Assembly (NCBI GenBank): GCA_964199315.1
Contig: OZ116709.1
Span: forward strand, 12,772,001 to 12,836,000
Length of the DNA stretch: 64,000 bases
Reading direction: 5' to 3'
Source: Orbicella franksi
Taxonomy: Eukaryota
Shown here: piece by piece, positions 56,601-64,000 of the stretch
Layout of the letters: the number at the start of each line of letters is the position of its first letter
Position numbering within the stretch: position 1 is the first letter of the stretch
Notes under the pieces: model-generated
Databases searched by the model: none
Told to the model about the DNA's origin: nothing
The model's input: only the letters and a program-made list of their open reading frames with translations
Position numbers and translations under genes: made by a program

Positions 56601-59600
56601 ATACGAGTAAGTGATCGAGTTTATCATACGCATGATTTATATCAATAACTTTTTCCATTCATTCGCTTGGTCGCGGGAAAGAAAACGATATAACCTTTTG
56701 ACGAAGAGTTAAAGCGATGGTTTGAAGACATAATTTATAGATAGATTCCTGGTTGGATTACTGGTCACTGATGACTCGCTTTTCCCAAAACAATCGAGAG
56801 AACCGTTGTGTCTGCGTGAATTTCCTCCTCAAAAACCTGCCACTTAATTATGCATTCGCAAGCTCGAAATTTACATTCGAGACAAGCTCGCTGTCATTGT
56901 TGTTATGGACAGTCCTGAGTTAAACAAAGAAACAATCATTTCCGTATAGTGTACTCCGTTAAACAGTAGATCGCAACAAACAAGCAGTATTCCTGCAATC
57001 CCACTGAGCTGGCAAACTGCGAGAATTTAATATCACTTTTTGAACAACGCGACAACAAAAATCTCGCCGTATTTTTAGTAAAAATATTTTGTCGCCAAAT
57101 CCAGCGCGTGCATGGTGACGTGTTTCTATGAATACACGTACTGTACGGTAAATAACATTTAAATATTGTTTTAAGCAAATATACCAGTGTTTAAAAAGCT
57201 TGGCCAGGCGAATTGTGAAAAAAGGTAATTACCTATGTTAATAAAATTTTCGCTACAAGATTCGAAAAAGTGCACAGTGGGCATTACTTCTAATGAAAAG
57301 CCATAATTAATTTTTGCAGAAGGTAATCTGTTTTCCAAAATGTAAAGAAAATATTATGGCTGTCACGAGACCAATATAAAAAGCAAGGGCAAAAACAATT
57401 CATACGGCGAGAAAACAAGTTACACACCAGTCTGAAATAGGACAAACAAAAGCACATTGCCTTGTTCGTTTCACCAGTATACGGTAATACACACAAACCA
57501 AACGTAAACAAAAGCTTTCATTGCTTTCACTGGCAACAACTTTGATTACAATTCAGACACTTTCCTTCCAATTAGTTCTTTTCTTGCGTTTCCTTAGCAA
57601 TGAAAAGAAATAGTTTACAATGCACTTTTCTTCTGCCAAAAATATCTATTGAATTACGAGCCATTACAGTATCAACGGCAGGAGGTGAAATTGTTCTCTA
57701 AATTAGCCAAGAAAAGGTTTTACATAATTACAAACTAATTCTACGCTTCTCTCCCCTAACACGAACAAATGCTCACTTATAAAACTGTGAAAACGAAAAC
57801 TCAAGTGACATATACCAGAAAAAAGAAAGCGATTCGTTCACTAGATTTGATCAATCAAGAATAAATCGATATTGTAATGAACTGTCTTAGAGGCCATGGA
57901 AATTTCCATTGATCCGTATTCCTGCTAAGGAAACAAACCTGTTTAAGCTTCGAGTCATTTATTCTACTCTACTCCAAGGCGATTACTTATCTTTGTTTTC
58001 ACTTTTTTATATATCTTTGTTTTTACTTCGTTTCCGAGCAAACAACTTAAATTTAAGAAGCAGCGCACGTTAACCTATCACGTGGTCTGCAGTTTGTCAC
58101 TTTTTGTCGCGGTTTAGGCATTTTAATATTTTATCGCGGGTTCTTTATTTCTAATGAAAAAGAAAGCAATTGCTACAATTTCCATTAACCTAAAGATTAC
58201 CACCATAAGGTATGTTAAGTATTTTCACGATGCCTTCAGCTTTGTAAATAAGAAACTATTTTGAAAATGGAATTTAAAATTCAGAGAAACTTCTCTTCGT
58301 TTATCAAACATGCACAAAGACAGCTTAGGTTTTTTGCACTTTCAAAAAGCAAAAACAGACAATCCAAGTGGCAAAAGGAAAGAGTGAAACAACAGCTACA
58401 AATTAACTCTCGCACATAACCGTACAGAAACAAGCGAGTGAAAGCGAGACGGAGTGCTGCCAACATTCTTATTATATATTCAGATTTAGACCCCGTCCAC
58501 AAGTATCCGGATATTTGTGAATCCGCAACTTTTTCTTTCCGGATTCAAAAATTTCCCCGTCCACACGTAGCAAAAATATCCGGATTCGCTGCCGAATTCG
58601 CCGGATGCCGCGTGTGGACGGAAGCCGTATCCGGAAAGAAAAAGTTGCGGATTCAAAAATATCCGGATACGTGTGGGCGGGGCCTTAAACACCTCAGGAT
58701 TAGTGGAAACGGCTTTTTAAGAAGGTGAGGCAGCCTGGTTTGTAAAGTATACTGCAACACGCGTTTTCCGATGTGTCGAAATTACAGAATGTTAAAGCAA
58801 GGCTTGAAAAGTAATCCTTACGCTGAAACATCTACTTCTCAAGACAACAACAGAATAAGTTGATCTAAATTCACTTTAACTTTTGCTGTACGAAAAACGA
58901 AGTCCAGGCTAAATGAACACGGACCAAAGTGGAGCGGTTTTCAATCGACTATCGCCTGAAGGAACTGTTTCCTTGTCCTTTGTGCGTACTTTTTTTCCTG
59001 AGTTCACAGCAAACAGCGAAACCAAAAGTAATTATGGCGTACTTCACGCGTTGTTCCCGCGCTTGGTAACGGTAACACCTTTTTGCTTCGATTTCGGATC
59101 GGCCCATAACGTTGTTCACTGTGATAGGCCAGATGCGATTCACGCTACAAATAAGTGGACAACCTTACCTTAATCTCCTCAATTTCTTCCTTGATGCTTT
59201 CTGGCTCAGCCCCAAATGCTCGCTGCGTATTCAGCTGGTCTTCCACCTTAGACATCACTTGTGCCAGCTTTTCCAAGTCATTGCAGTATTCGTCGGCTAG
59301 AGGCAGCACGTTTTCCAAGGTCCTTCGTCGGTCAGCGGTCATATCAACGATGCTGCTCAATGCTTCAGTCACGTGATGTATCTCCCTGGAGAGGTCCTGT
59401 TTGTCGCCTGGTTGTGCGTTCTGTACCAGGATCTCGCTGACTTTGGTGAAGTTTTCGATGATAGGTGTACGGTCAGTTATTTCGTCTTCAATGTTCTGAG
59501 AAAATAAAGATGATTCTATCAATAAAATAGTAGCGGTGCATCTTTCTTGTGGTCTCCAAGAATAGCCACACACTTGGGTTTCATCTAAACTTGAGAGGTA

Positions 59601-62600
59601 GAACCACTCTTTGGGGGGTGACGTTTTACTCCAGCAGTGGAAAGGTTAAGTAAATACGTATGTCAGGATTTCTGCGTCAGTCGTGTTTGTTTTTAAATGA
59701 ATATTGGATCATTACCATTTTTAACTGTTAGGATCCCGAGCTACTTCTCATCGTGACTTCCTTCACAACGATTTGCAATTTGCGACAGGACAACGTTTGA
59801 ATTATCCGTTTAAATTGTTATTTGCATTTAGCAGATTAATACTAAATTGACTCGGTAAATTAGAGGATAAATTTTGTAAATAACTAACAATTGAGCATAG
59901 CTAGGCTGATGAAACACCTTTTGTTACAAGAAAAGATTATTATTAGCTGTTTAAAAGCTATAATTACACAATTCACATGTTTTAGAAGAATAACATATTT
60001 AGTTCAGTTGTTAATAGGCTAACGAACGATTCTTACAATCACGACAGAAAGGCATAAAGAGAAAATATGTCGACTTTTAAGTCTAAATGAACCCAATGTG
60101 AACGTTAAGAGATTATCAAAGCTTAATGAGCAAACAAGTGCATATGGGTGGACAGTGAAAACGTGGAACGGTCGCGTAAACTACAGCTGATGCCATGGAT
60201 ACTTGGGTACAACGTGCAAACAATGCTCATACAATTTGTAAATGATCAAGACTAACGAACACAGTACGGAGTGTGCAGATCGAAGAATGAATGGGTGCAC
60301 GAACACAAAGAAAATCGATTCTGTTGGAACCAGAGATGATGTATTAGAGTATCAACGTACAAGCACGTGTCGTGTATAAATGAATATGTTTGAAGAGGAC
60401 AATACATAAAGGAGATATGTTGAGAGAACACTTGCACTGAAAGAACGATGAACGTGAAGTTAGCAAGGGGACGGTCAGTTTGAAGCTCAAACGGCAGGTG
60501 GATGAAGCAATATGGCTAGCAAACAATCCATAAAACCTTTCAAACACACATCACTAACACAACTTATTACTCTGAAAAAGAAAAAAAACTGGGTTAAACA
60601 GAAATAAAACACAAAGCGATGTACAGGGTGCTGTTACAAGTGCATAACGTGTTCATATTTACTGACCACTTTCACCAAAACCAATCATTAATTGGTACAA
60701 TAAGATGACACTGACAGCCAATGACATGTGATTAAATAAACACCAGCCACTGTGGACAAAATGTAAAATGACACAGTGTGATGTGCAAAAAAAATAAAAA
60801 CAATATCAAAAGAATGCTTGGTGTACACATAACGTAATAGATCAGCTTTATTTTATTGTTATCATTATTATAACATTTAGATCTTGTTATTTAATTGACA
60901 ATATAAAATAAGAACGGAATAAATGTTTATTACAAGAAGGTCAGTCTTGGATTCATGCTGGTAAAACTCTCCTCGTGGAGAGAGGTAGTTTGTTATTTCT
61001 TAGAGTGGAACCACACGGTCCCGATTGCTTATTATTTCGTCAAGAACGTTCAATCGATCGCATTCTTTACAATTGGGTGATTTATGTTATTTACAGATTA
61101 TCAGCTTTAGAGTACCATCTGCTGTCCTTATTTTGCTTGTTTTTCTGTGACAATGAGCCACCATAAGACACTACGTTGCTCGTTAAGCATGCAAGCGACG
61201 ACCACAAATTCCTGTCTCTTAAAAAAGGTTTCACCTCATAAAAACACACATCTACAACGATGGTCAACAGTACGCTACGTCTCCTGTCACAAGCAGAAAC
61301 GATGCAATTCTACCTGGCATGCAATTGTCATGCAATTTCTCTCAACAGCATTGACAGCCATCATGCAAATCTACACACATTCCATCTGACAGGAATACCT
61401 TGATCTGTTGCAGCTGGTCTTTGATTTCATCCACCTTCCACGAGACTGGCCTCATCCAGCTCAGCGTCTTCAACGTGACAAGCATCCACTGTAAGAAATT
61501 CTCCAGAACAAAATTAAACTGCATGTACCTCGAGCTGTAGATAAAAATCATCGACTTGTGCTCTAAAACATACTGATACAGTGTTTCGATGATAACGAGG
61601 TAACGTTGTACAACTGTTGTTTCGTATGGAATGGACTCTCTTCTGGGAGATATTGCTTGCATCTGAGTGAAAAGAACAGTTTCAGGTGTAATCGCCTCAA
61701 CACTTTCTATTTCTTTCCTTGGAGCTACTTCTTCGGTTACCTGGTACAGTCCAACAGGCTTATCTCTTTCCTCAGACAAGACTCTTCGCTGCACGGTTGT
61801 TGTCGTCGTTCGTTTTACGATTCTCTTTACTGTAACACCATTTTCATCAACATATTCTTCGACCAATTCATCAGGAGAAATGCCTTCTCTGTCTTGTACA
61901 GGAAATTCCACCGCCGCTGGCTCTAGTTCATGGCGTTGTCTCCTAATAGTTGTTCTTGTTGTTGTTGTTGTGATGCTTCGTTTCACGATTCGTCTCACAC
62001 GAACGCCATTCTCATCAGTATACTCTTCAACTTCCTCTTGTGGCTCGTCGTCGGATAGTGCAACAGGAAATTTAACTTCCGCTGGTTCGGTCCGTTGACC
62101 TTCTCTTTTGATACTGGTTGTTGTAATGGTTCTCCTGACAATCCGCCTAACACGAACTCCGTTCTCATCAACATACTCCTCAACTTCTTCGGGTGATTCA
62201 TCTTCCATTCCCTCGATTTCAGGAATAACTATTTCCCGATTCAAAGTTGCCGAAGGAACTCTCTCCATTACGTCATCGTGGTCAAGATCTTCCTTTAACT
62301 CTGGTTTTGTTGACTGCGACGGCACAATTAAGAAAGAAATGTCTCCTGTAGGTTGTCTAGGTTCTTCTGATGCTGGTTCACTCTCCTCCATCCATTCAGG
62401 AAGAACAACTTCACGTGTTTGCACTGAAGGAACAACATCATCAGAGTCAAAATAAACAGGAGCTGCTAACTCAAACATCTTTGCACCTGGACCGTCCTTT
62501 GCTTCATCAACAGATGTACGGATTACACTTCTTGTTGTAATGGTTCGCCTCACAATTCTCCTCACACGAACGCCATTTTCGTCAATATATTCCTCGAAAT

Positions 62601-64000
62601 CTTCTGGTGATTCATCTTCAGATGGTGTTAAAGGAAATTTAACTTCCACTGGTCCAACCTCGGCGCCTCCTCTTTTTTTTGTTGCCGTTGTAGCGATTCG
62701 TTTAACAATTCTTCTCACCCGAACACCATTCTCATCAATATACTCCTCGACTTCCTCTGGACTTTCACCTTCTGATGATGCAACAGGAAATTTAACCTCC
62801 ACTGGTTCAGTCCCTTCACTTTCTCTTTTAATACTGGTTGTCGTGATGGTTCTCCTGACAATCCGCCTCACCCGAGAACCGTTCTCATCAACAAATTCTT
62901 CAACTTCTTCGGGTGATTCATCTTCCATTCCCTCGATTTCAGGCATAACTATTTCCCGATTCAAAGTTGTCGAGGTAACTCTCTCCATTTCGTCCTCGCG
63001 ATCAAGGTCTTCTTTTAACCCAGGTTCTTTAGGCTGAGAAGATAGAATTAAGAAAGAAATGTCATCTGTAGGCTGTCTCGGTTCTTCTGATCCTGGTTCA
63101 CTCTCCTCCATCCATTCAGGAAGGACAACTTCACGTGTTTGCACTGAGGGAACAACATCATCAGAGTCAAGGTAAACAGGAGCAGCTGACTCAAACATCT
63201 TTGCACCTGGTCCGTCCTTTGCTTCATCAACAGATGAACGGATTATACTTCTTGTTGTAATAGCTCGCCTCACAGTTCTCCTCACACGAACGCCATTTTC
63301 GTCAATATATTCCTCGAAATCTTCTGGTGATTCATCCTCAGATGGTGTTAAAGGAAATTTAACTTCCACTGGTCCAATCTCAGCGCCTTCTCTTTTTGTA
63401 GTTGCCGTTGTAACGATTCGTTTTACAATTCTTCTCACCCGAACACCATTCTCATCAATATACTCCTCGACTTCCTCTGGACTTTCACCGTCTGATAGTG
63501 CAACAGGAAATTTAACTTCTACTGGTTCAGTCCCTTGACCTTCTCTTTTGATACTGGTTGTGGTGATGGTTCTCCTGACAATCCGCCTCACCCGAGAACC
63601 GTTCTCATCAACATACTCTTCAACTTCTTCGGGTGATTCATCTTCCATTCCCTCGATTTCAGGCATAACTATTTCCCGATTCAAAGTTGTCGAGGTAACT
63701 CTCTCCATTACGTCCTCGGAATCAAGGTCTTCTTTTGACCCAGGTTCTTTAGGCTGAGAAGGCAGAATTAACAAAGAAATGTCTTCTGAAGGCTGTCTCG
63801 GTTCTTTTGATGCTGGTTCACTCTCCTCCATCCATTCAGGAAGGACAACTTCACGTGTTTGCACTGAAGGAACAACATCATCAGAGTCAAGATAAACAGG
63901 AGCTGCTGACTCAAACATCTTTGTACCTGGATCATCCTTCGCTTCATCAACAGATGTACGGATTATACCTCTTGTTGTAATGGTTCGCCTCACAATTCTC
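108..64000 (-). CDS. MACF1/DST: Giant spectraplakin (MACF1/dystonin/Shot-like), partial multi-exon gene: 60 coding exons in window, about 8,900 aa, about 73 spectrin repeats plus an acidic repeat exon
   Basis: Chain of minus-strand ORF segments bounded by AG/GT that splice in frame. Spectrin-repeat heptads with conserved Trp. EGALLQLGQFQLALEELLVW...GDVKFIEVEKAKH (108-440) and ENALLACGKFQDALQSLLDWLAET...KAQMQEQK (6864-7193) match my recollection of the MACF1/DST rod. ABD, plakin, EF-hand and GAR domains are not seen in the window. Confidence 0.9.
597..760 (-). mobile_element. degenerate tRNA-derived SINE
   Basis: Minus strand starts GGCTACTTGGCGAAGTGG (A-box-like) with a decayed B-box; the body resembles a cnidarian SINE consensus as I recall it. 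Confidence 0.55.
858..1987. mobile_element. fold-back element with about 290-bp imperfect inverted arms (858-1143 / 1691-1987)
   Basis: AATGAATGAGTTGCCAGTAAGCGG... is the near reverse complement of ...CCGATTACTGGCAACTCATTCATT, and similarity extends through the whole arm. Confidence 0.85.
1144..1540 (+). pseudogene. Penelope-like retroelement fragment (RT C-terminal/thumb-linker region), frameshifted
   Basis: ENFSTRLISRGYPEQMVEKTL...RKEALKQK followed out of frame by IFKEPPLICYRKGKSLKYVLVKAK; both motifs are typical of PLEs. Confidence 0.7.
2045..2371 (-). CDS. MACF1/DST: spectraplakin exon, 1 spectrin repeat
   Basis: AG|ELRSELD...QLQEQK|GT, 327 nt, phase 0. Confidence 0.9.
2911..3240 (-). 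CDS. MACF1/DST: spectraplakin exon, 1 spectrin repeat
   Basis: AG|GLQSEFD...QIHDHQ|GT, 330 nt. Confidence 0.9.
3439..3768 (-). CDS. MACF1/DST: spectraplakin exon, 1 spectrin repeat
   Basis: AG|SIQEGIT...AQIEEIK|GT, 330 nt. Confidence 0.9.
4111..4425 (-). CDS. MACF1/DST: spectraplakin exon, 1 spectrin repeat
   Basis: AG|ALNADVA...QQERIK|GT, 315 nt. Confidence 0.9.
5012..5338 (-). CDS. MACF1/DST: spectraplakin exon, 1 spectrin repeat
   Basis: AG|DIQKALA...QLGDQA|GT, 327 nt. Confidence 0.9.
5637..5948 (-). CDS. MACF1/DST: spectraplakin exon, 1 spectrin repeat
   Basis: AG|ELCQEID...QQEMLK|GT, 312 nt. Confidence 0.9.
6289..6618 (-). CDS. MACF1/DST: spectraplakin exon, 1 spectrin repeat
   Basis: AG|LFTRMIA...DAKKLQ|GT, 330 nt. 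Confidence 0.9.
6864..7193 (-). CDS. MACF1/DST: spectraplakin exon, 1 spectrin repeat (MACF1-like CGKFQDAL repeat)
   Basis: AG|DLQKEID...QMQEQK|GT, 330 nt. Confidence 0.92.
7314..7398. mobile_element. Tc1/mariner (pogo/Tigger-type) MITE
   Basis: TA|CAGTGGAACCTCG...CGAGGTCCCACTG|TA: TIRs with a TA target-site duplication. Confidence 0.8.
7660..7983 (-). CDS. MACF1/DST: spectraplakin exon, 1 spectrin repeat
   Basis: AG|LLKAEVD...QLEDIK|GT, 324 nt. Confidence 0.9.
8396..9046 (-). CDS. MACF1/DST: spectraplakin exon, 2 spectrin repeats
   Basis: AG|ELQQDVE...QLEKAK|GT, 651 nt. Confidence 0.9.
9214..9540 (-). CDS. MACF1/DST: spectraplakin exon, 1 spectrin repeat (type B)
   Basis: AG|DIHQEIK...CKQHVE|GT, 327 nt. 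Confidence 0.9.
10113..10442 (-). CDS. MACF1/DST: spectraplakin exon, 1 spectrin repeat (type A)
   Basis: AG|ALKDDLE...QKDSYQ|GT, 330 nt. Confidence 0.9.
11007..11339 (-). CDS. MACF1/DST: spectraplakin exon, 1 spectrin repeat (type D)
   Basis: AG|ALIQELE...QLEQLQ|GT, 333 nt. Confidence 0.9.
11760..12413 (-). CDS. MACF1/DST: spectraplakin exon, 2 spectrin repeats (B,C)
   Basis: AG|ELQEKIR...DLDNIK|GT, 654 nt. Confidence 0.9.
13075..13407 (-). CDS. MACF1/DST: spectraplakin exon, 1 spectrin repeat (type A)
   Basis: AG|ALKAQLE...QRSDDE|GT, 333 nt. Confidence 0.9.
13568..13812 (+). repeat. decayed about 100-110-bp minisatellite-like repeat
   Basis: GTGTGACC(A/T)TTCAAAT recurs at 13588 and 13696 with ctgtacaag motifs; the same family is at 26950-27185. 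Confidence 0.55.
13915..14247 (-). CDS. MACF1/DST: spectraplakin exon, 1 spectrin repeat (type D)
   Basis: AG|ELTAVLD...QLDLVR|GT, 333 nt. Confidence 0.9.
14879..15646 (-). CDS. MACF1/DST: spectraplakin exon, about 2.3 spectrin repeats (end of A, B, C)
   Basis: AG|VSFDEFM...QLAKIK|GT, 768 nt; joining to the upstream exon restores the SQEFQ-VSFDEF consensus. Confidence 0.88.
16065..16283 (-). CDS. MACF1/DST: spectraplakin exon, partial repeat (type A, first part)
   Basis: AG|ALRDEIA...RSQEFQ|GT, 219 nt. Confidence 0.88.
16535..17521 (-). CDS. MACF1/DST: spectraplakin exon, 3 spectrin repeats (B,C,D)
   Basis: AG|PVNDTIQ...QLQQAE|GT, 987 nt. Confidence 0.9.
17748..17908. mobile_element. Tc1/mariner (pogo/Tigger-type) MITE
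   Basis: CAGTGGAATCCCAATTTCTCGAACC...GGTTCGAAAAATCGGGATTCCACTG, 25-bp TIR; TSD decayed. Confidence 0.8.
18070..18402 (-). CDS. MACF1/DST: spectraplakin exon, 1 spectrin repeat (type A)
   Basis: AG|VLKDDIT...QSQQQK|GT, 333 nt. Confidence 0.9.
20635..20967 (-). CDS. MACF1/DST: spectraplakin exon, 1 spectrin repeat (type D)
   Basis: AG|ALLSVLK...QLEEAQ|GT, 333 nt. Confidence 0.9.
21119..24745 (-). CDS. MACF1/DST: spectraplakin large exon, 11 spectrin repeats (ABCD ABCD ABC)
   Basis: AG|ALQNEIA...ELRKIE|GT, 3627 nt = 1209 codons. Confidence 0.93.
25182..25514 (-). CDS. MACF1/DST: spectraplakin exon, 1 spectrin repeat (type D)
   Basis: AG|ALLTLMA...RLEQTE|GT, 333 nt. Confidence 0.9.
25583..25755. 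mobile_element. palindromic MITE (AATAG...CTATT family)
   Basis: About 45-bp TIR AATAGACCGTTTTCGTATGCTCGG.../...CCGAGAATACGAAAATGACCTATT; second copy at 51798-51944. Confidence 0.8.
26176..26829 (-). CDS. MACF1/DST: spectraplakin exon, 2 spectrin repeats (B,C)
   Basis: AG|IMKDDVK...ELNNTK|GT, 654 nt. Confidence 0.9.
26950..27185 (+). repeat. decayed about 100-bp minisatellite-like repeat (same family as 13568)
   Basis: ctgtggatgaaa...gtgaccatttaaatgaaag...ttctaactt motifs repeated 2-3 times. Confidence 0.55.
27275..28591 (-). CDS. MACF1/DST: spectraplakin exon, 4 spectrin repeats (B,C,D,A)
   Basis: AG|PVFEDVQ...QERQFE|GT, 1317 nt. Confidence 0.9.
29083..29733 (-). CDS. MACF1/DST: spectraplakin exon, 2 spectrin repeats (D,A)
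   Basis: AG|KAIVLLN...LKKDHV|GT, 651 nt. Confidence 0.9.
29767..29985. repeat. interspersed repeat fragment with internal 12-bp tandem (GGAATATACCAC)x3
   Basis: Tandem visible at 29789-29822; boundaries approximate. Confidence 0.4.
30281..30619 (-). CDS. MACF1/DST: spectraplakin exon, 1 spectrin repeat (type C)
   Basis: AG|TLQHEIL...ELAEIK|GT, 339 nt. Confidence 0.88.
31068..31397 (-). CDS. MACF1/DST: spectraplakin exon, 1 spectrin repeat (type B)
   Basis: AG|VLEKDLD...QLELLE|GT, 330 nt. Confidence 0.9.
31781..32113 (-). CDS. MACF1/DST: spectraplakin exon, 1 spectrin repeat (type A)
   Basis: AG|DVEEDVQ...QQDKLQ|GT, 333 nt. Confidence 0.9.
32262..32440 (+). mobile_element. MITE (GTTTTCACGTGAC...GTGAAAACG family)
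   Basis: TIR-like ends; the core ggcagccatattggtg...ccaaaccaatcctgtggg is shared with the copy at 48658-48800. Confidence 0.75.
32607..32939 (-). CDS. MACF1/DST: spectraplakin exon, 1 spectrin repeat (type D)
   Basis: AG|TMIKEME...ELDKVQ|GT, 333 nt. Confidence 0.9.
33350..33676 (-). CDS. MACF1/DST: spectraplakin exon, 1 spectrin repeat (apparent A/C chimera)
   Basis: AG|ALQEEAN...ELGKVD|GT, 327 nt. Confidence 0.88.
33940..34282. mobile_element. MITE (TTTCATAAATGGC...GCCATTTATG family) interrupted by a nested MITE
   Basis: Flanks 33940-34073 and 34230-34282 align with the uninterrupted copy at 46241-46425. Confidence 0.7.
34074..34229. mobile_element. nested palindromic MITE (AATAG...CTATT type)
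   Basis: AATAGGTCACTTTCGACATATTAAAATTCAGCTTG / CAAGCTGAATTTTAATATATCGAAAACAGTCTATT TIRs. Confidence 0.8.
34320..34640 (-). CDS. MACF1/DST: spectraplakin exon, 1 spectrin repeat (type D)
   Basis: AG|VIQEDVY...QLKEVQ|GT, 321 nt. Confidence 0.88.
34833..34877 (-). ncRNA. minimal type I hammerhead ribozyme motif (sense to the host pre-mRNA)
   Basis: TAACT-CTGAAGA-T-GAC[13 nt]GTC-GAAA-CGTC-GGTCA; core intact, stem I has one mismatch and one G-U pair. Confidence 0.6.
35268..35312 (+). ncRNA. minimal type I hammerhead ribozyme motif
   Basis: TGACT-CTGAAGA-T-GAC[13 nt]GTC-GAAA-CGTC-AGTCA: stem I TGACT/AGTCA, core CUGANGA and GAAA, palindromic ACGT stem III, GUC cleavage triplet. Confidence 0.7.
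35926..36276 (-). CDS. MACF1/DST: spectraplakin exon, 1 spectrin repeat (type C)
   Basis: AG|YLQQFVQ...KLDTLK|GT, 351 nt; an alternative in-frame acceptor at 36264 would give 339 nt. Confidence 0.8.
36614..36778. mobile_element. palindromic MITE (AATAG...CTATT type)
   Basis: AATAGGCCATTTTTGATCCATTAAAATT / AATTTTAATATACTGAAAATGGCCTATT; related to the element at 34074-34229. Confidence 0.75.
36856..37188 (-). CDS. MACF1/DST: spectraplakin exon, 1 spectrin repeat (type B)
   Basis: AG|GLYLEIT...EQTFIK|GT, 333 nt. Confidence 0.9.
37499..37831 (-). CDS. MACF1/DST: spectraplakin exon, 1 spectrin repeat (type A)
   Basis: AG|ALNEEFQ...QKEDHE|GT, 333 nt. Confidence 0.9.
37920..38045 (+). mobile_element. 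tRNA-derived SINE fragment
   Basis: A-box-like AGCTCAATGG and B-box GGTTCGAATCC followed by a non-tRNA tail (GGGGACTCAGATCATTTTTCTTTGTCCC). Confidence 0.65.
38246..38401 (-). CDS. MACF1/DST: spectraplakin exon, half repeat (type D second half; absent from the ORF track)
   Basis: AG|GRLTKHVEKLLMFMKIQHEVEVWIEEM...QLANAK|GT, 156 nt, translated by hand. Confidence 0.85.
38589..38742. repeat. interrupted (TAA)n microsatellite
   Basis: Direct reading of the sequence. Confidence 0.95.
38852..39007 (-). CDS. MACF1/DST: spectraplakin exon, half repeat (type D first half)
   Basis: AG|ELLSTLE...KLKRQK|GT, 156 nt. Confidence 0.85.
39455..39793 (-). CDS. MACF1/DST: spectraplakin exon, 1 spectrin repeat (type C)
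   Basis: AG|AFLEGVE...ELVKVD|GT, 339 nt. Confidence 0.88.
40019..40270 (+). mobile_element. TIR element, probably Kolobok-type MITE
   Basis: AGGACAGACCATTATTT...AAACATAATAGCCCGTTCCTAA ends; the body is shared with 46574-46843. Confidence 0.65.
40349..40678 (-). CDS. MACF1/DST: spectraplakin exon, 1 spectrin repeat (type B)
   Basis: AG|VFCKEIV...HKADAQ|GT, 330 nt. Confidence 0.9.
41103..41435 (-). CDS. MACF1/DST: spectraplakin exon, 1 spectrin repeat (type A)
   Basis: AG|DLQDDLE...QKQDQE|GT, 333 nt. Confidence 0.9.
41477..41710. mobile_element. Kolobok-type MITE
   Basis: TTAA|AGGAGCTACGTCAC...GTGACCGAGCTCCT|TTCA: TIR with a TTAA-like TSD. Confidence 0.65.
41970..42110 (-). CDS. MACF1/DST: spectraplakin exon, half repeat with GC donor (absent from the ORF track)
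   Basis: AG|VIENAEDFQSAVEVFESWLPRV...QLKEAE|GCAAGT, 141 nt, translated by hand. Confidence 0.83.
42668..42859 (-). CDS. MACF1/DST: spectraplakin exon, half repeat (absent from the ORF track)
   Basis: AG|TLKSVVE...QIKLEQ|GT, 192 nt; 192+141 = 333. Confidence 0.85.
43048..43575. mobile_element. non-autonomous hairpin-bearing element, class uncertain (possibly rolling-circle related)
   Basis: 84-nt imperfect hairpin 43074-43157 with a CCGCGAAGCGG apex; internal inverted repeat TTAATCATAACAATTACAATTT / AAATTGTAATTGTTATGATTAA; TGTCCGATTACA x3. Confidence 0.6.
43750..44088 (-). CDS. MACF1/DST: spectraplakin exon, 1 spectrin repeat (type C)
   Basis: AG|TLQEDVV...NRDTLK|GT, 339 nt. Confidence 0.88.
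44449..44648. mobile_element. short decayed copy of the Penelope-derived fold-back
   Basis: Starts with the same AATGGTTTGAAC(C/T)CAGGAGTATCAGT as 34751; inverted arms; hammerhead core mutated. Confidence 0.7.
44801..45130 (-). CDS. MACF1/DST: spectraplakin exon, 1 spectrin repeat (type B)
   Basis: AG|IVVREVG...QYRHLA|GT, 330 nt. Confidence 0.88.
45633..45965 (-). CDS. MACF1/DST: spectraplakin exon, 1 spectrin repeat (type A)
   Basis: AG|NLEEEVV...QRTSHE|GT, 333 nt. Confidence 0.88.
46241..46425. mobile_element. MITE (TAGACC..TTTCATAAATGGC family)
   Basis: ATAGACCACTTTCATAAATGGCGGCCAATT / AATTGGCAGCCAGTTATGAAAAGGGTCTA TIRs. Confidence 0.75.
46574..46843 (+). mobile_element. TIR element, probably Kolobok-type MITE
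   Basis: TTAGGGACGGACCATT...AATGGTCCGTCTGTCCCTA; paralog of 40019-40270. Confidence 0.7.
46872..47045 (-). CDS. MACF1/DST: spectraplakin exon, half repeat
   Basis: AG|VRLKERK...QLQHVQ|GT, 174 nt. Confidence 0.82.
47224..48178. mobile_element. about 950-bp non-autonomous element with a long terminal hairpin, class uncertain
   Basis: 45-bp arms 47234-47278 / 47340-47384 with 1 mismatch around GGCCGCAGGCC; right boundary approximate. Confidence 0.55.
48215..48325 (-). CDS. MACF1/DST: spectraplakin exon, partial repeat (absent from the ORF track)
   Basis: AG|KMIDVLEKSEIKLLRL...DNRVMQ|GT, 111 nt. Confidence 0.75.
48424..48543 (-). CDS. MACF1/DST: spectraplakin exon, partial repeat
   Basis: AG|VQEVMQP...ELIKVN|GT, 120 nt. 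Confidence 0.82.
48658..48800 (+). mobile_element. MITE (ATAGAGTGTTTTCAC...GTGAAAACGCTCTAT)
   Basis: Clear TIRs; paralog at 32262-32440. Confidence 0.8.
48821..49039 (-). CDS. MACF1/DST: spectraplakin exon, partial repeat
   Basis: AG|ALREDLE...NKTLAL|GT, 219 nt; 219+120 = 339. Confidence 0.85.
49437..49775 (-). CDS. MACF1/DST: spectraplakin exon, 1 spectrin repeat (type B)
   Basis: AG|VIKEDVD...KQEQLK|GT, 339 nt. Confidence 0.88.
50262..50594 (-). CDS. MACF1/DST: spectraplakin exon, 1 spectrin repeat (type A)
   Basis: AG|ATKVALA...QGSGLK|GT, 333 nt. Confidence 0.88.
51014..51343 (-). CDS. MACF1/DST: spectraplakin exon, 1 spectrin repeat
   Basis: AG|GVLKAVE...QLAELK|GT, 330 nt. Confidence 0.88.
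51454..51650. mobile_element. probable MITE
   Basis: GTGTTGCGGGCGTTCGGT ... ACCGATCGCCTGAACAC imperfect TIR. Confidence 0.4.
51798..51944. mobile_element. palindromic MITE, paralog of 25583-25755
   Basis: AATGGACCATTTTCGTATTCCCGG...CCGAGAATACGAATATGGCCTGTT. Confidence 0.75.
52065..52394 (-). CDS. MACF1/DST: spectraplakin exon, 1 spectrin repeat
   Basis: AG|ADRRDVL...ELQNIK|GT, 330 nt. Confidence 0.88.
52899..53054 (-). CDS. MACF1/DST: spectraplakin exon, partial repeat
   Basis: AG|ETVYTLP...DEIANT|GT, 156 nt. Confidence 0.82.
53144..53292. mobile_element. PIF/Harbinger-type MITE
   Basis: CAG|GCCTCAGTTGTTCGAA...TTAAACAACCCCGGC|CAG, 3-bp CWG duplication, internal GGATA/TATCC palindromes. 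Confidence 0.7.
53352..53513. mobile_element. CAG-ended TIR MITE (hAT-like)
   Basis: CAGTGTTCCAGATAAG / CTTATCCGGAACCCTG (14 of 16 match) flanked by CTCTTC on both sides. Confidence 0.6.
53846..53987 (-). CDS. MACF1/DST: spectraplakin exon, partial repeat (phase 2 in, phase 0 out)
   Basis: CAG|G TTG CCA AAC...CCG CTG|GTCAGT, 142 nt; the donor choice is less certain. Confidence 0.7.
54413..54510 (-). CDS. MACF1/DST: spectraplakin exon, partial repeat (phase 0 in, phase 2 out; absent from the ORF track)
   Basis: AG|ACREEISKHKPLLTTATLTGDWLIRNAHSSSA-TT|GTAAGT, 98 nt; its phase matches the next exon. Confidence 0.8.
54850..55170 (-). CDS. MACF1/DST: spectraplakin exon, 1 spectrin repeat
   Basis: AG|NLQSTLD...RLEELE|GT, 321 nt. 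Confidence 0.88.
55970..56545 (-). CDS. putative internal alternative first exon, 192-aa Cys-rich N-terminus
   Basis: ATG at 56545 in GAAATGT context with an in-frame TAA 11 codons upstream. 192 open codons (12 Cys) end at TTGAG|GTAGGC, a phase-0 donor compatible with the exon at 55170. No transcript evidence available. Confidence 0.55.
58489..58684. mobile_element. PIF/Harbinger-type MITE
   Basis: TTA|GACCCCGTCCACAAGTATCCGGATATT...AATATCCGGATACGTGTGGGCGGGGCC|TTA; about 58-bp TIR, TTA TSD. Confidence 0.85.
59169..59495 (-). CDS. MACF1/DST: spectraplakin exon, 1 spectrin repeat
   Basis: AG|NIEDEIT...EIEEIK|GT, 327 nt. Confidence 0.9.
61188..61367 (-). promoter_or_regulatory. cluster of 4 TGCATG (RBFOX-type) intronic splicing elements
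   Basis: catgca on the + strand at 61188, 61318, 61329 and 61362, all within about 210 nt downstream of the giant-exon donor. Confidence 0.65.
61399..64000 (-). CDS. MACF1/DST: giant acidic repeat exon of the spectraplakin (5' part outside the window)
   Basis: More than 860 open codons, E/P/T/V/R-rich tandem repeats, ending in a spectrin-like helix FVLENFLQWM...PVSWKVDEIKDQLQQIK|GTATTC, phase 0. Confidence 0.85.
61960..64000 (-). repeat. coding tandem array, 720-bp (240-aa) unit x about 3, each with three EEYxDENG motifs spaced 153/153/414 nt
   Basis: Lines 63961, 63241 and 62521 are near-identical at exact 720-nt offsets, with no indels between units 1 and 2. Confidence 0.92.

Follow-up and report, generated by a model that had tools for sequence, protein, structure and literature searches.

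A conserved array of predicted beta-hairpin units in the giant exon of a coral cytolinker gene, a candidate multivalent interaction platform

The window, the whole stretch of 64,000 nucleotides that was analysed, ends on a segment best read as belonging to a coral gene for a spectrin-repeat cytolinker, in which it would form the 3' part of a giant, transcribed exon. The exon would lie where the plakin-repeat exon is found in bilaterian spectraplakins, and it would encode an acidic, mostly disordered chain with short autonomous beta-hairpins every 51 aa. Its content is a new conserved cnidarian repeat module and most likely a multivalent interaction array. To the fuller reading, in which charge-zipped hairpins form a multivalent array on a disordered acidic tether, a candidate docking or self-association platform encoded by a probably regulated exon, we give about an even chance.

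The reading frame is open on the minus strand from the window edge at 64000 to 61342 (ORF translation). Two RNA runs, X12 and X24, both labelled coral metagenome, were used to locate the exon border. Position 61399 was joined to 59495 in polyA RNA-seq reads (X24) and in an RNA contig (X12, depth 149), with the donor context ATCAAG/GTATTC and the acceptor context TTTTCTCAG/AAC (slashes mark the exon boundaries). This joint sets 61399 as the last exonic base of the giant exon, exactly the start coordinate given to the region by an earlier reading of the letters alone (the sequence-only reading). The features at this end of the exon are:

61399..64000, minus strand: giant coding exon, 3' 2.6 kb, based on the open frame, the RNA depth and the relatives P0042 and P0006; the 5' part lies beyond the window
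61399..61632, minus strand: non-repetitive exon end, YETTVVQRYLVIIETLYQYVLEHK...WMRPVSWKVDEIKDQLQQIK, leading into the rod, with the same junction in P0006, P0015, P0022, P0023 and P0046
61188..61367, minus strand: four TGCATG (RBFOX-type) sites, 32-211 nt 3' of the donor (motif count)
59496..61398, minus strand: GT..AG intron of 1903 nt, 3' of the giant exon (RNA joint and splice-site contexts)
59169..59495, minus strand: next exon, a spectrin repeat, joined in frame (...QQIK/NIEDEITDR)

Since the RNA reads splice the giant exon in frame into a spectrin-repeat exon and Pfam Spectrin is present in the downstream exons (E 1.7e-72 on a 1217-aa exon of the minus strand, and on other exons as well), the sequence-only reading was right both in counting the segment to the mRNA of this gene and in placing it directly upstream of the rod. 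In run X12 the giant exon had a word depth of 181, compared with 15-20 for the intron and 414-550 for the next exon. The giant exon is expressed, as its depth is far above that of the intron, and some transcripts may skip it, contig depth being a poor measure of this. Four of the 12 minus-strand TGCATG sites of the 64 kb are packed into 180 nt just past the donor. The region 3' of the donor is the classic position of inclusion enhancers at RBFOX-regulated exons, and the site cluster suggests regulated inclusion of the giant exon. A candidate intron of 40 nt within the last 80 codons of the exon was excluded, as the orthologues align through it and the donor in the RNA is 61399.

Translation of the minus strand (63999 to 61342) yielded nine full copies of the motif EE[YF]xDENGxxV[RK]R[IT]V[RK]RxxTT, starting at residues 127, 178, 229, 367, 418, 469, 607, 658 and 714, and a tenth copy cut by the window edge. 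The same count had been made earlier, and it is confirmed by the translation together with the profile scores. With a motif-core profile the nine copies scored 37-47 bits each, and the six-frame translation of the whole 64 kb held no other copy with a score above 0 bits. A period of 153 nt was found by Tandem Repeats Finder, and the units are organised in a super-repeat of 720 nt (240 aa), composed of a 113-aa spacer, which holds a conserved FESAAPVYLDSDDVVPSVQTREVVLPEWMEESEP, and three 51-aa units:

63964..64000, minus strand: edge-cut motif copy, basic strand RIVRRTITT only (translation)
63547..63630, minus strand: motif 1, EVEEYVDENGSRVRRIVRRTITTT, 44.5 bits
63394..63477, minus strand: motif 2, EVEEYIDENGVRVRRIVKRIVTTA, 41.9 bits
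63241..63324, minus strand: motif 3, DFEEYIDENGVRVRRTVRRAITTR, 38.7 bits
62827..62910, minus strand: motif 4, EVEEFVDENGSRVRRIVRRTITTT, 43.9 bits
62677..62757, minus strand: motif 5, EVEEYIDENGVRVRRIVKRIATTA, 39.1 bits, heading unit alignment A4, predicted hairpin
62521..62604, minus strand: motif 6, DFEEYIDENGVRVRRIVRRTITTR, 43.4 bits
62107..62190, minus strand: motif 7, EVEEYVDENGVRVRRIVRRTITTT, 46.9 bits
61954..62037, minus strand: motif 8, EVEEYTDENGVRVRRIVKRSITTT, 42.6 bits
61789..61863, minus strand: motif 9, LVEEYVDENGVTVKRIVKRTTTTT, 37.4 bits
63250..63969, minus strand: super-repeat copy 1, 240 aa, 113-aa spacer and three 51-aa hairpin units
62530..63249, minus strand: super-repeat copy 2, 240 aa (repeat alignment and AlphaFold2 model)
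61810..62529, minus strand: super-repeat copy 3, more diverged, its last unit shifted by an insertion (repeat alignment)

Super-repeat copies 1 and 2 are young duplicates, 90% identical with a dS of about 0.1. Repetition alone is no surprise, because the copies in the window are tandem duplicates. The dN/dS among them was 0.31 for the motif and 0.47 for the rest, an underpowered comparison on few sites and with copy 3 out of register.

What exceeds chance is the conservation of the motif across species, not its repetition. A search of 1.84 billion representative proteins with a profile of the nine units (threshold E <1e-3) matched 41 proteins. The members examined were either orthologous exons with the same rod junction or belonged to one small paralogous family, and word-seeded sequence searches returned only coral-type proteins. 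The top matches were ORFs spanning the whole orthologous exon in other corals, 1792-2439 aa in length with about 12-25 motifs; among them, P0042 has 2439 aa, 25 matches to the motif regex and 82% identity with the window, and P0006 has 1792 aa, with 12 regex matches and 13 stretches by profile. The only named match, A7SF37 of Nematostella vectensis, measures 3258 aa and carries 26 motif stretches, with a spectrin repeat near its end. The divergent relatives P0015, P0022, P0023 and P0046/P0014 end in a window-like junction into the first rod repeat, for which the common pattern is ...Y.L[VI].E.[KR]S...F.LE.F..W...LRPV[ST]W...IKV. Because divergent relatives keep both the array and this rod junction, the array is an old, conserved part of the gene. 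Several motif-rich exons preceded by spectrin-repeat exons were present at one related locus (L003), and at another (L004) spectrin-repeat exons also lie upstream of the giant exon. In an alignment of 85 diverse units from many species, conservation is at least 90% at the core positions E, D, G, V and R, while columns overall average 27% identity; the unit flanks are not conserved in the way of the core. A two-motif module was also found in a small stand-alone paralogue with an N-terminal Cys cluster.

These comparisons bear on a neutral explanation, in which a tandem repeat has expanded recently within a tolerant linker and provides spacing only. Filler of this kind would account for the youth of the in-window copies and for a copy number that differs between species (about 12-26 motifs per protein, with a spacer that varies too). 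It fits poorly with a motif and an exon junction that persist in species where the units share only 30-40% identity with those of the window, with a dN/dS below 1 (on few sites), with a frame that is open over 5-9 kb in every species examined and with an exon that is expressed and spliced. We consider neutral filler very improbable.

The repeat part is acidic, with a pI of 4.5 and a net charge of about -75 over 790 aa, and is composed of E 16.7%, V 11.5%, R 9.9%, T 8.5%, P 7.5% and K 3.9%, among others. When the whole super-repeat was modelled by AlphaFold2 with a 19-sequence alignment, the mean pLDDT was 40.6, essentially disordered, and a strand-turn-strand was placed exactly at 3/3 motifs of the super-repeat. 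For a single unit with an 85-sequence alignment, the hairpin block reached a pLDDT of 76 and 69 and the flanks stayed below 50. The predicted strands, 20-26 and 32-38 (approximately PEEVEEY and VRVRRIV), lie around an IDENG turn, and per hairpin 4-5 acidic residues occupy one strand and 4-5 basic residues the other. Each motif is predicted, with moderate confidence (pLDDT about 70-76), to form a charge-paired beta-hairpin within an otherwise disordered chain. The acidic strand, DxxG turn and basic strand pointed out by the sequence-only reading are recovered as this hairpin in the AlphaFold2 prediction, and its description of the exon as acidic and probably disordered agrees with the pI and with the mostly disordered model.

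A chain of this type could alternatively act as a titin-PEVK-like elastic or entropic spring between the plakin domain and the rod, with hairpins that are sacrificial, unzip reversibly and need no specific partner. The acidic, Pro/Glu/Val-rich and predicted disordered chain, the regular period, the variation in copy number between species (about 12-26) and the force-bearing cytolinker that hosts the array would all suit a spring. The sum of P, E, V and K is 39.6% (P 7.5, E 16.7, V 11.5, K 3.9), however, far from the PEVK composition of at least about 70%. The strong conservation of E, D, G, V and R across divergent species goes beyond the needs of a spring, and the two-motif module is also present in the small stand-alone protein, which cannot be one. 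The spring is regarded as unlikely.

Pfam gave only sub-threshold noise for the window part and for the whole-exon relatives (PASTA, BRCT and Hormone_3). PDB sequence searches with the super-repeat and with the unit profile recovered no relative, and a text search of the literature for peptide strings returned no match. The leads from the ESM Atlas all scored below 0.8 (synemin at 0.74, protein 4.1 CTD, Xin and CEFIP), and protein 4.1 CTD was dropped, with 4_1_CTD absent from the Pfam matches even at E up to 10. PF27288, a precomputed label on many orthologues, proved to be a faint match to the cyanobacterial family Alr2735 and was set aside. Genes of this kind are already known, as is the notion of an optional giant exon; the content of the exon, the hairpin unit, its conservation in cnidarians and the stand-alone paralogue are not described in the resources searched.

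The gene is read as a spectraplakin, with the spectrin rod in the window; the CH/plakin end would lie outside it, and the EF-hand/GAS2 end beyond coordinate 1. This assignment rests on the report of a true spectraplakin with CH, plakin domain, spectrin repeats and GAS2 in the coral Stylophora (PMC9145010). At related loci the exons upstream encode spectrin repeats and give no more than a faint SR_plectin_7 match (E 0.077), consistent with a plakin domain. As the sequence-only reading had stated, plakin repeats are missing: Pfam found no plectin repeats (PF00681), either in the part of the exon inside the window or in three ORFs of relatives that span the whole exon (P0042, P0002 and P0125). 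Their absence from the exon agrees with the placement of plectin repeats as arising in Bilateria (PMC9145010).

A likeness of the motif to the obscurin-binding motif of ankyrins had also been put forward. As queries we used the two 23-aa sequences that the sequence-only reading gave for the obscurin-binding peptides of AnkB and sAnk1, and scored each with two profiles, the nine-unit one and a core profile of 229 instances, with 5000 composition-preserving shuffles each. The AnkB peptide scored 17.5 bits (nine-unit) and 18.2 bits (core), values reached by 0/5000 and 0/5000 shuffles with a shuffle maximum of 13.7. For the sAnk1 peptide the scores were 8.3 bits (nine-unit) and 10.6 bits (core), reached by 9/5000 and 0/5000 shuffles, with a shuffle maximum of 12.2. 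Profile similarity over a shuffled background, suggested earlier as a check, is present for both peptides. When the peptides were embedded in random proteins of realistic length, the E values per 20,000 proteins were 0.1-0.4 for AnkB and 2-32 for sAnk1. No ankyrin occurred among the 41 matches of the nine-unit profile search (1.84 billion proteins), nor was one returned by word-seeded searches aimed at the 155-aa sAnk1 and, through an EEYIDEHG variant, ankyrins of about 1900 aa. ANK, ZU5 and Death domains were absent from the scanned matches, and spectrin repeats lie on both sides of the host exon. The claimed likeness is suggestive in so far as both peptides exceed their shuffles; it is weakened by the E value of sAnk1 and by the failure to retrieve any ankyrin.

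The numbering of the two peptides fits that of the published residues (PMC2172649, PMC11927728). Four residues are critical in ank1.5, namely T99, K101, R104 and K105 (PMC2172649). The basic stretches of sAnk1, K100-R108 and R64-V-V-R-R-R-F-F-L-K73, bind obscurin by charge, and the hydrophobic residues of R64-K73 are needed too; the cytoplasmic domain is modelled with a central beta-sheet and not with ankyrin-like helices (PMC11927728). Self-association of sAnk1 was mapped to G31-V36 and R64-R69, according to a study as cited in PMC11927728. In a hand-extended HMM alignment to the coral consensus, R104 alone of the four critical residues faces a basic coral residue (R). The same alignment sets T99 against R, K100 against R, K101 against I and K105 against T; basic character is kept and the register is not identical. 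Variants reading EEYIDEHG, identical over 8 residues to the start of the AnkB peptide, occur in the 5' part of the exon.

It follows from the beta-sheet model of sAnk1 and from the binding of obscurin by its basic stretches through charge and hydrophobic residues that a unit which works like sAnk1 is plausible. True homology would make the array an ancient metazoan docking hairpin that links the spectraplakin in muscle to a sarcomeric partner, obscurin-like or other. The shuffle results, the AnkB E value of 0.1-0.4 per proteome, the residue numbering of the peptides, the beta-sheet model of sAnk1 (PMC11927728) and the EEYIDEHG variants speak for such a homologue. Its case suffers from the ankyrin-free search results, from an sAnk1 match that is not significant (E 2-32), from the single critical residue that faces a basic one, from query peptides taken from the sequence-only reading and from the obscurin side, where the non-modular tail that ankyrins bind is absent from invertebrate obscurins (PMC12812942). 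The resemblance is suggestive and stands above shuffles, but as a sequence likeness it is too weak to establish homology or common descent; we find this explanation improbable.

The docking of the motifs on Ig domains, as proposed by the sequence-only reading, does not agree with the literature. The ankyrin sites bind the non-modular tail of obscurin, not its Ig domains, and invertebrate obscurins, including UNC-89 and fly obscurin, are without ankyrin-binding domains (PMC12812942). As ankyrins do not dock on obscurin Ig domains, an Ig-docking array with an obscurin-like partner in cnidarian muscle is unsupported. Coupling of the spectraplakin to obscurin-like proteins in muscle would be purely conjectural. 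Cnidarians are said, reportedly by Steinmetz et al. in 2012, to lack titin.

The preferred reading is the multivalent hairpin array with a docking or self-association role, which is most likely the role of the array; the hairpin fold is a prediction. In each unit the acidic strand (EVEEYxD) would pair across the DENG turn with the basic strand (xRVRRIVRR), after which comes a Thr-rich tail. Every hairpin would present a surface both hydrophobic and basic, in the manner of the sAnk1 basic strands on an acidic obscurin segment, and the 12-26 hairpins per protein would act as a multivalent docking or self-association platform between plakin domain and rod. The cnidarian array would in this way fill the optional-linker role that plakin repeats fill in bilaterians. 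There are counterpoints to docking. The acidic strand could neutralise the basic strand intramolecularly and leave a partner little to bind to, weak hairpins arrayed along an acidic, Pro/Glu-rich chain suit an elastic linker equally well, and the AlphaFold2 confidence is moderate for the hairpin and very low elsewhere.

Spectraplakins are the master cross-linkers of actin, microtubules and intermediate filaments in animals, and current opinion has their optional giant exon arise in bilaterians, together with plakin repeats. Corals and sea anemones already have a giant, expressed exon at what is read as the position of the bilaterian plakin-repeat exon, built of a different conserved unit, a predicted hairpin. 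The array is a concrete module for asking what the ancestral linker did. It raises the question of the ligand in animals without titin and without the ankyrin-binding tail of obscurin, and the question whether a wider class of motifs takes in the obscurin-binding sequences of ankyrins, which are important in function yet obscure in structure. A wider proposal, rather doubtful in our view, holds the charge-zipped hairpin to be an ancient animal docking module, still present twice in vertebrate ankyrin tails, where it forms the obscurin-binding sites, and used by cnidarians 12-26 times in their spectraplakin, which has it instead of plakin repeats, as well as twice in the small Cys-cluster protein. 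If true, this multivalent system of membrane/cytoskeleton coupling would be older than titin and obscurin-A.

Three known systems can be set beside the array. The plakin-repeat exon of Shot, MACF1b and BPAG1b is likewise a giant exon between plakin domain and spectrin rod; the genes are of one kind, and in both the exon seems to be a module that is regulated or optional. It encodes globular plakin-repeat domains, whereas the coral exon has 51-aa hairpin units in disordered sequence and no plectin repeats. The PEVK region of titin is also inserted in a giant cytoskeletal protein and is similarly repetitive, acidic, disordered and rich in Pro, Glu and Val. It differs in its 28-aa PPAK and poly-E modules, which are lacking in the coral, where the 51-aa unit has a strict hairpin core. 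The obscurin-binding sites of vertebrate ankyrins (sAnk1.5 64-73 and 100-108, and the homologous C-terminal segments of AnkB and AnkG107) appear to share with the coral motif an acidic/aromatic stretch, a D-E-x-G turn and a basic/hydrophobic strand, and they too are arranged in tandem (two in ankyrin), with modelled beta structure, in the poorly ordered tail of a cytoskeletal adaptor. The coral host is instead a spectrin-repeat cytolinker with 12-26 copies versus two, the sequence similarity is borderline, and the obscurin site known to be bound by ankyrins is specific to vertebrates.

Among runs X1-X14, those labelled metatranscriptomic were found to contain 72-78% of the words sampled from a stretch in which introns make up about 60%. 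DNA or unspliced RNA is evidently present in them, and they are not to be taken as a sign of transcription. Two RNA runs labelled as coral metagenome, X12 and X24, join the giant-exon donor at 61399 to the next exon at 59495. At window position 61956, all four X24 RNA reads and the X12 contig carry a 3-nt deletion compared to the window, located after motif 8 within the Thr-run tract ACAACAACA. The Thr tail is polymorphic in length here.

Word depth in run X12 (window 59169-62207) was 181 for the giant exon and 149 for the junction contig, with 414-550 for the next exon, whose contig stops at both exon borders. These depths and contig ends may reflect a giant exon that some of the transcripts lack, or the joining of further upstream exons at 59495. 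Downstream of the donor, the following feature was located.

61188-61367, minus strand: TGCATG cluster of four sites, lying up to 211 nt downstream of the giant-exon donor.

Only 12 minus-strand TGCATG sites were present across the whole 64 kb, of which these represent four. The cluster looks like an RBFOX-type inclusion enhancer of a regulated exon.

Besides the hairpin motif, the super-repeat of 240 aa contains a second element that is conserved.

62910-63249 (spacer) and its counterpart in each super-repeat: second conserved element, FESAAPVYLDSDDVVPSVQTREVVLPEWMEESEP.

Upon comparison of 19 super-repeats, the residues F, A, V, L, E, W, M and P of this element were nearly invariant, and the super-repeat model reaches its highest pLDDT (54-63) here. 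The element does not qualify as a canonical W-acidic kinesin motif. In the orthologous region of another species (L003:12265-14343; protein P0013), the repeat unit is 95 aa long and contains the same start of the hairpin motif, PVEEFTDDQGRVVKIIIVRTIVTRTVIKNGVKTVTKE. Since the sequence continues from there into further strand-like segments, the motif may represent the opening hairpin of a more extensive beta unit that corals have in reduced form.

The hairpin motif was also found in a family of stand-alone proteins, comprising 34 clusters of 362-603 aa (mostly about 440-540 aa), none of which has an assigned name. One member is encoded by an isolated ORF, around which spectrin exons are absent to a distance of 10 kb.

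L005:10001-11485: ORF of the stand-alone family.

Three members of the family (P0024, P0021 and P0039) share one order, with two hairpin motifs followed by an acidic run and EEIVVxExxRKPR; this two-motif and acidic/EEIVV module is shared with the 5' part of the coral giant exon (P0002, P0006 and P0011). P0024 and P0039 start with an N-terminal Cys cluster, MKACxRWCCPCC, which resembles a palmitoylation signal, while P0021 has no such cluster. A small, putatively lipid-anchored protein bearing two hairpin motifs is reminiscent, in its layout, of small ankyrin 1, a vertebrate ankyrin with obscurin-binding sequences.
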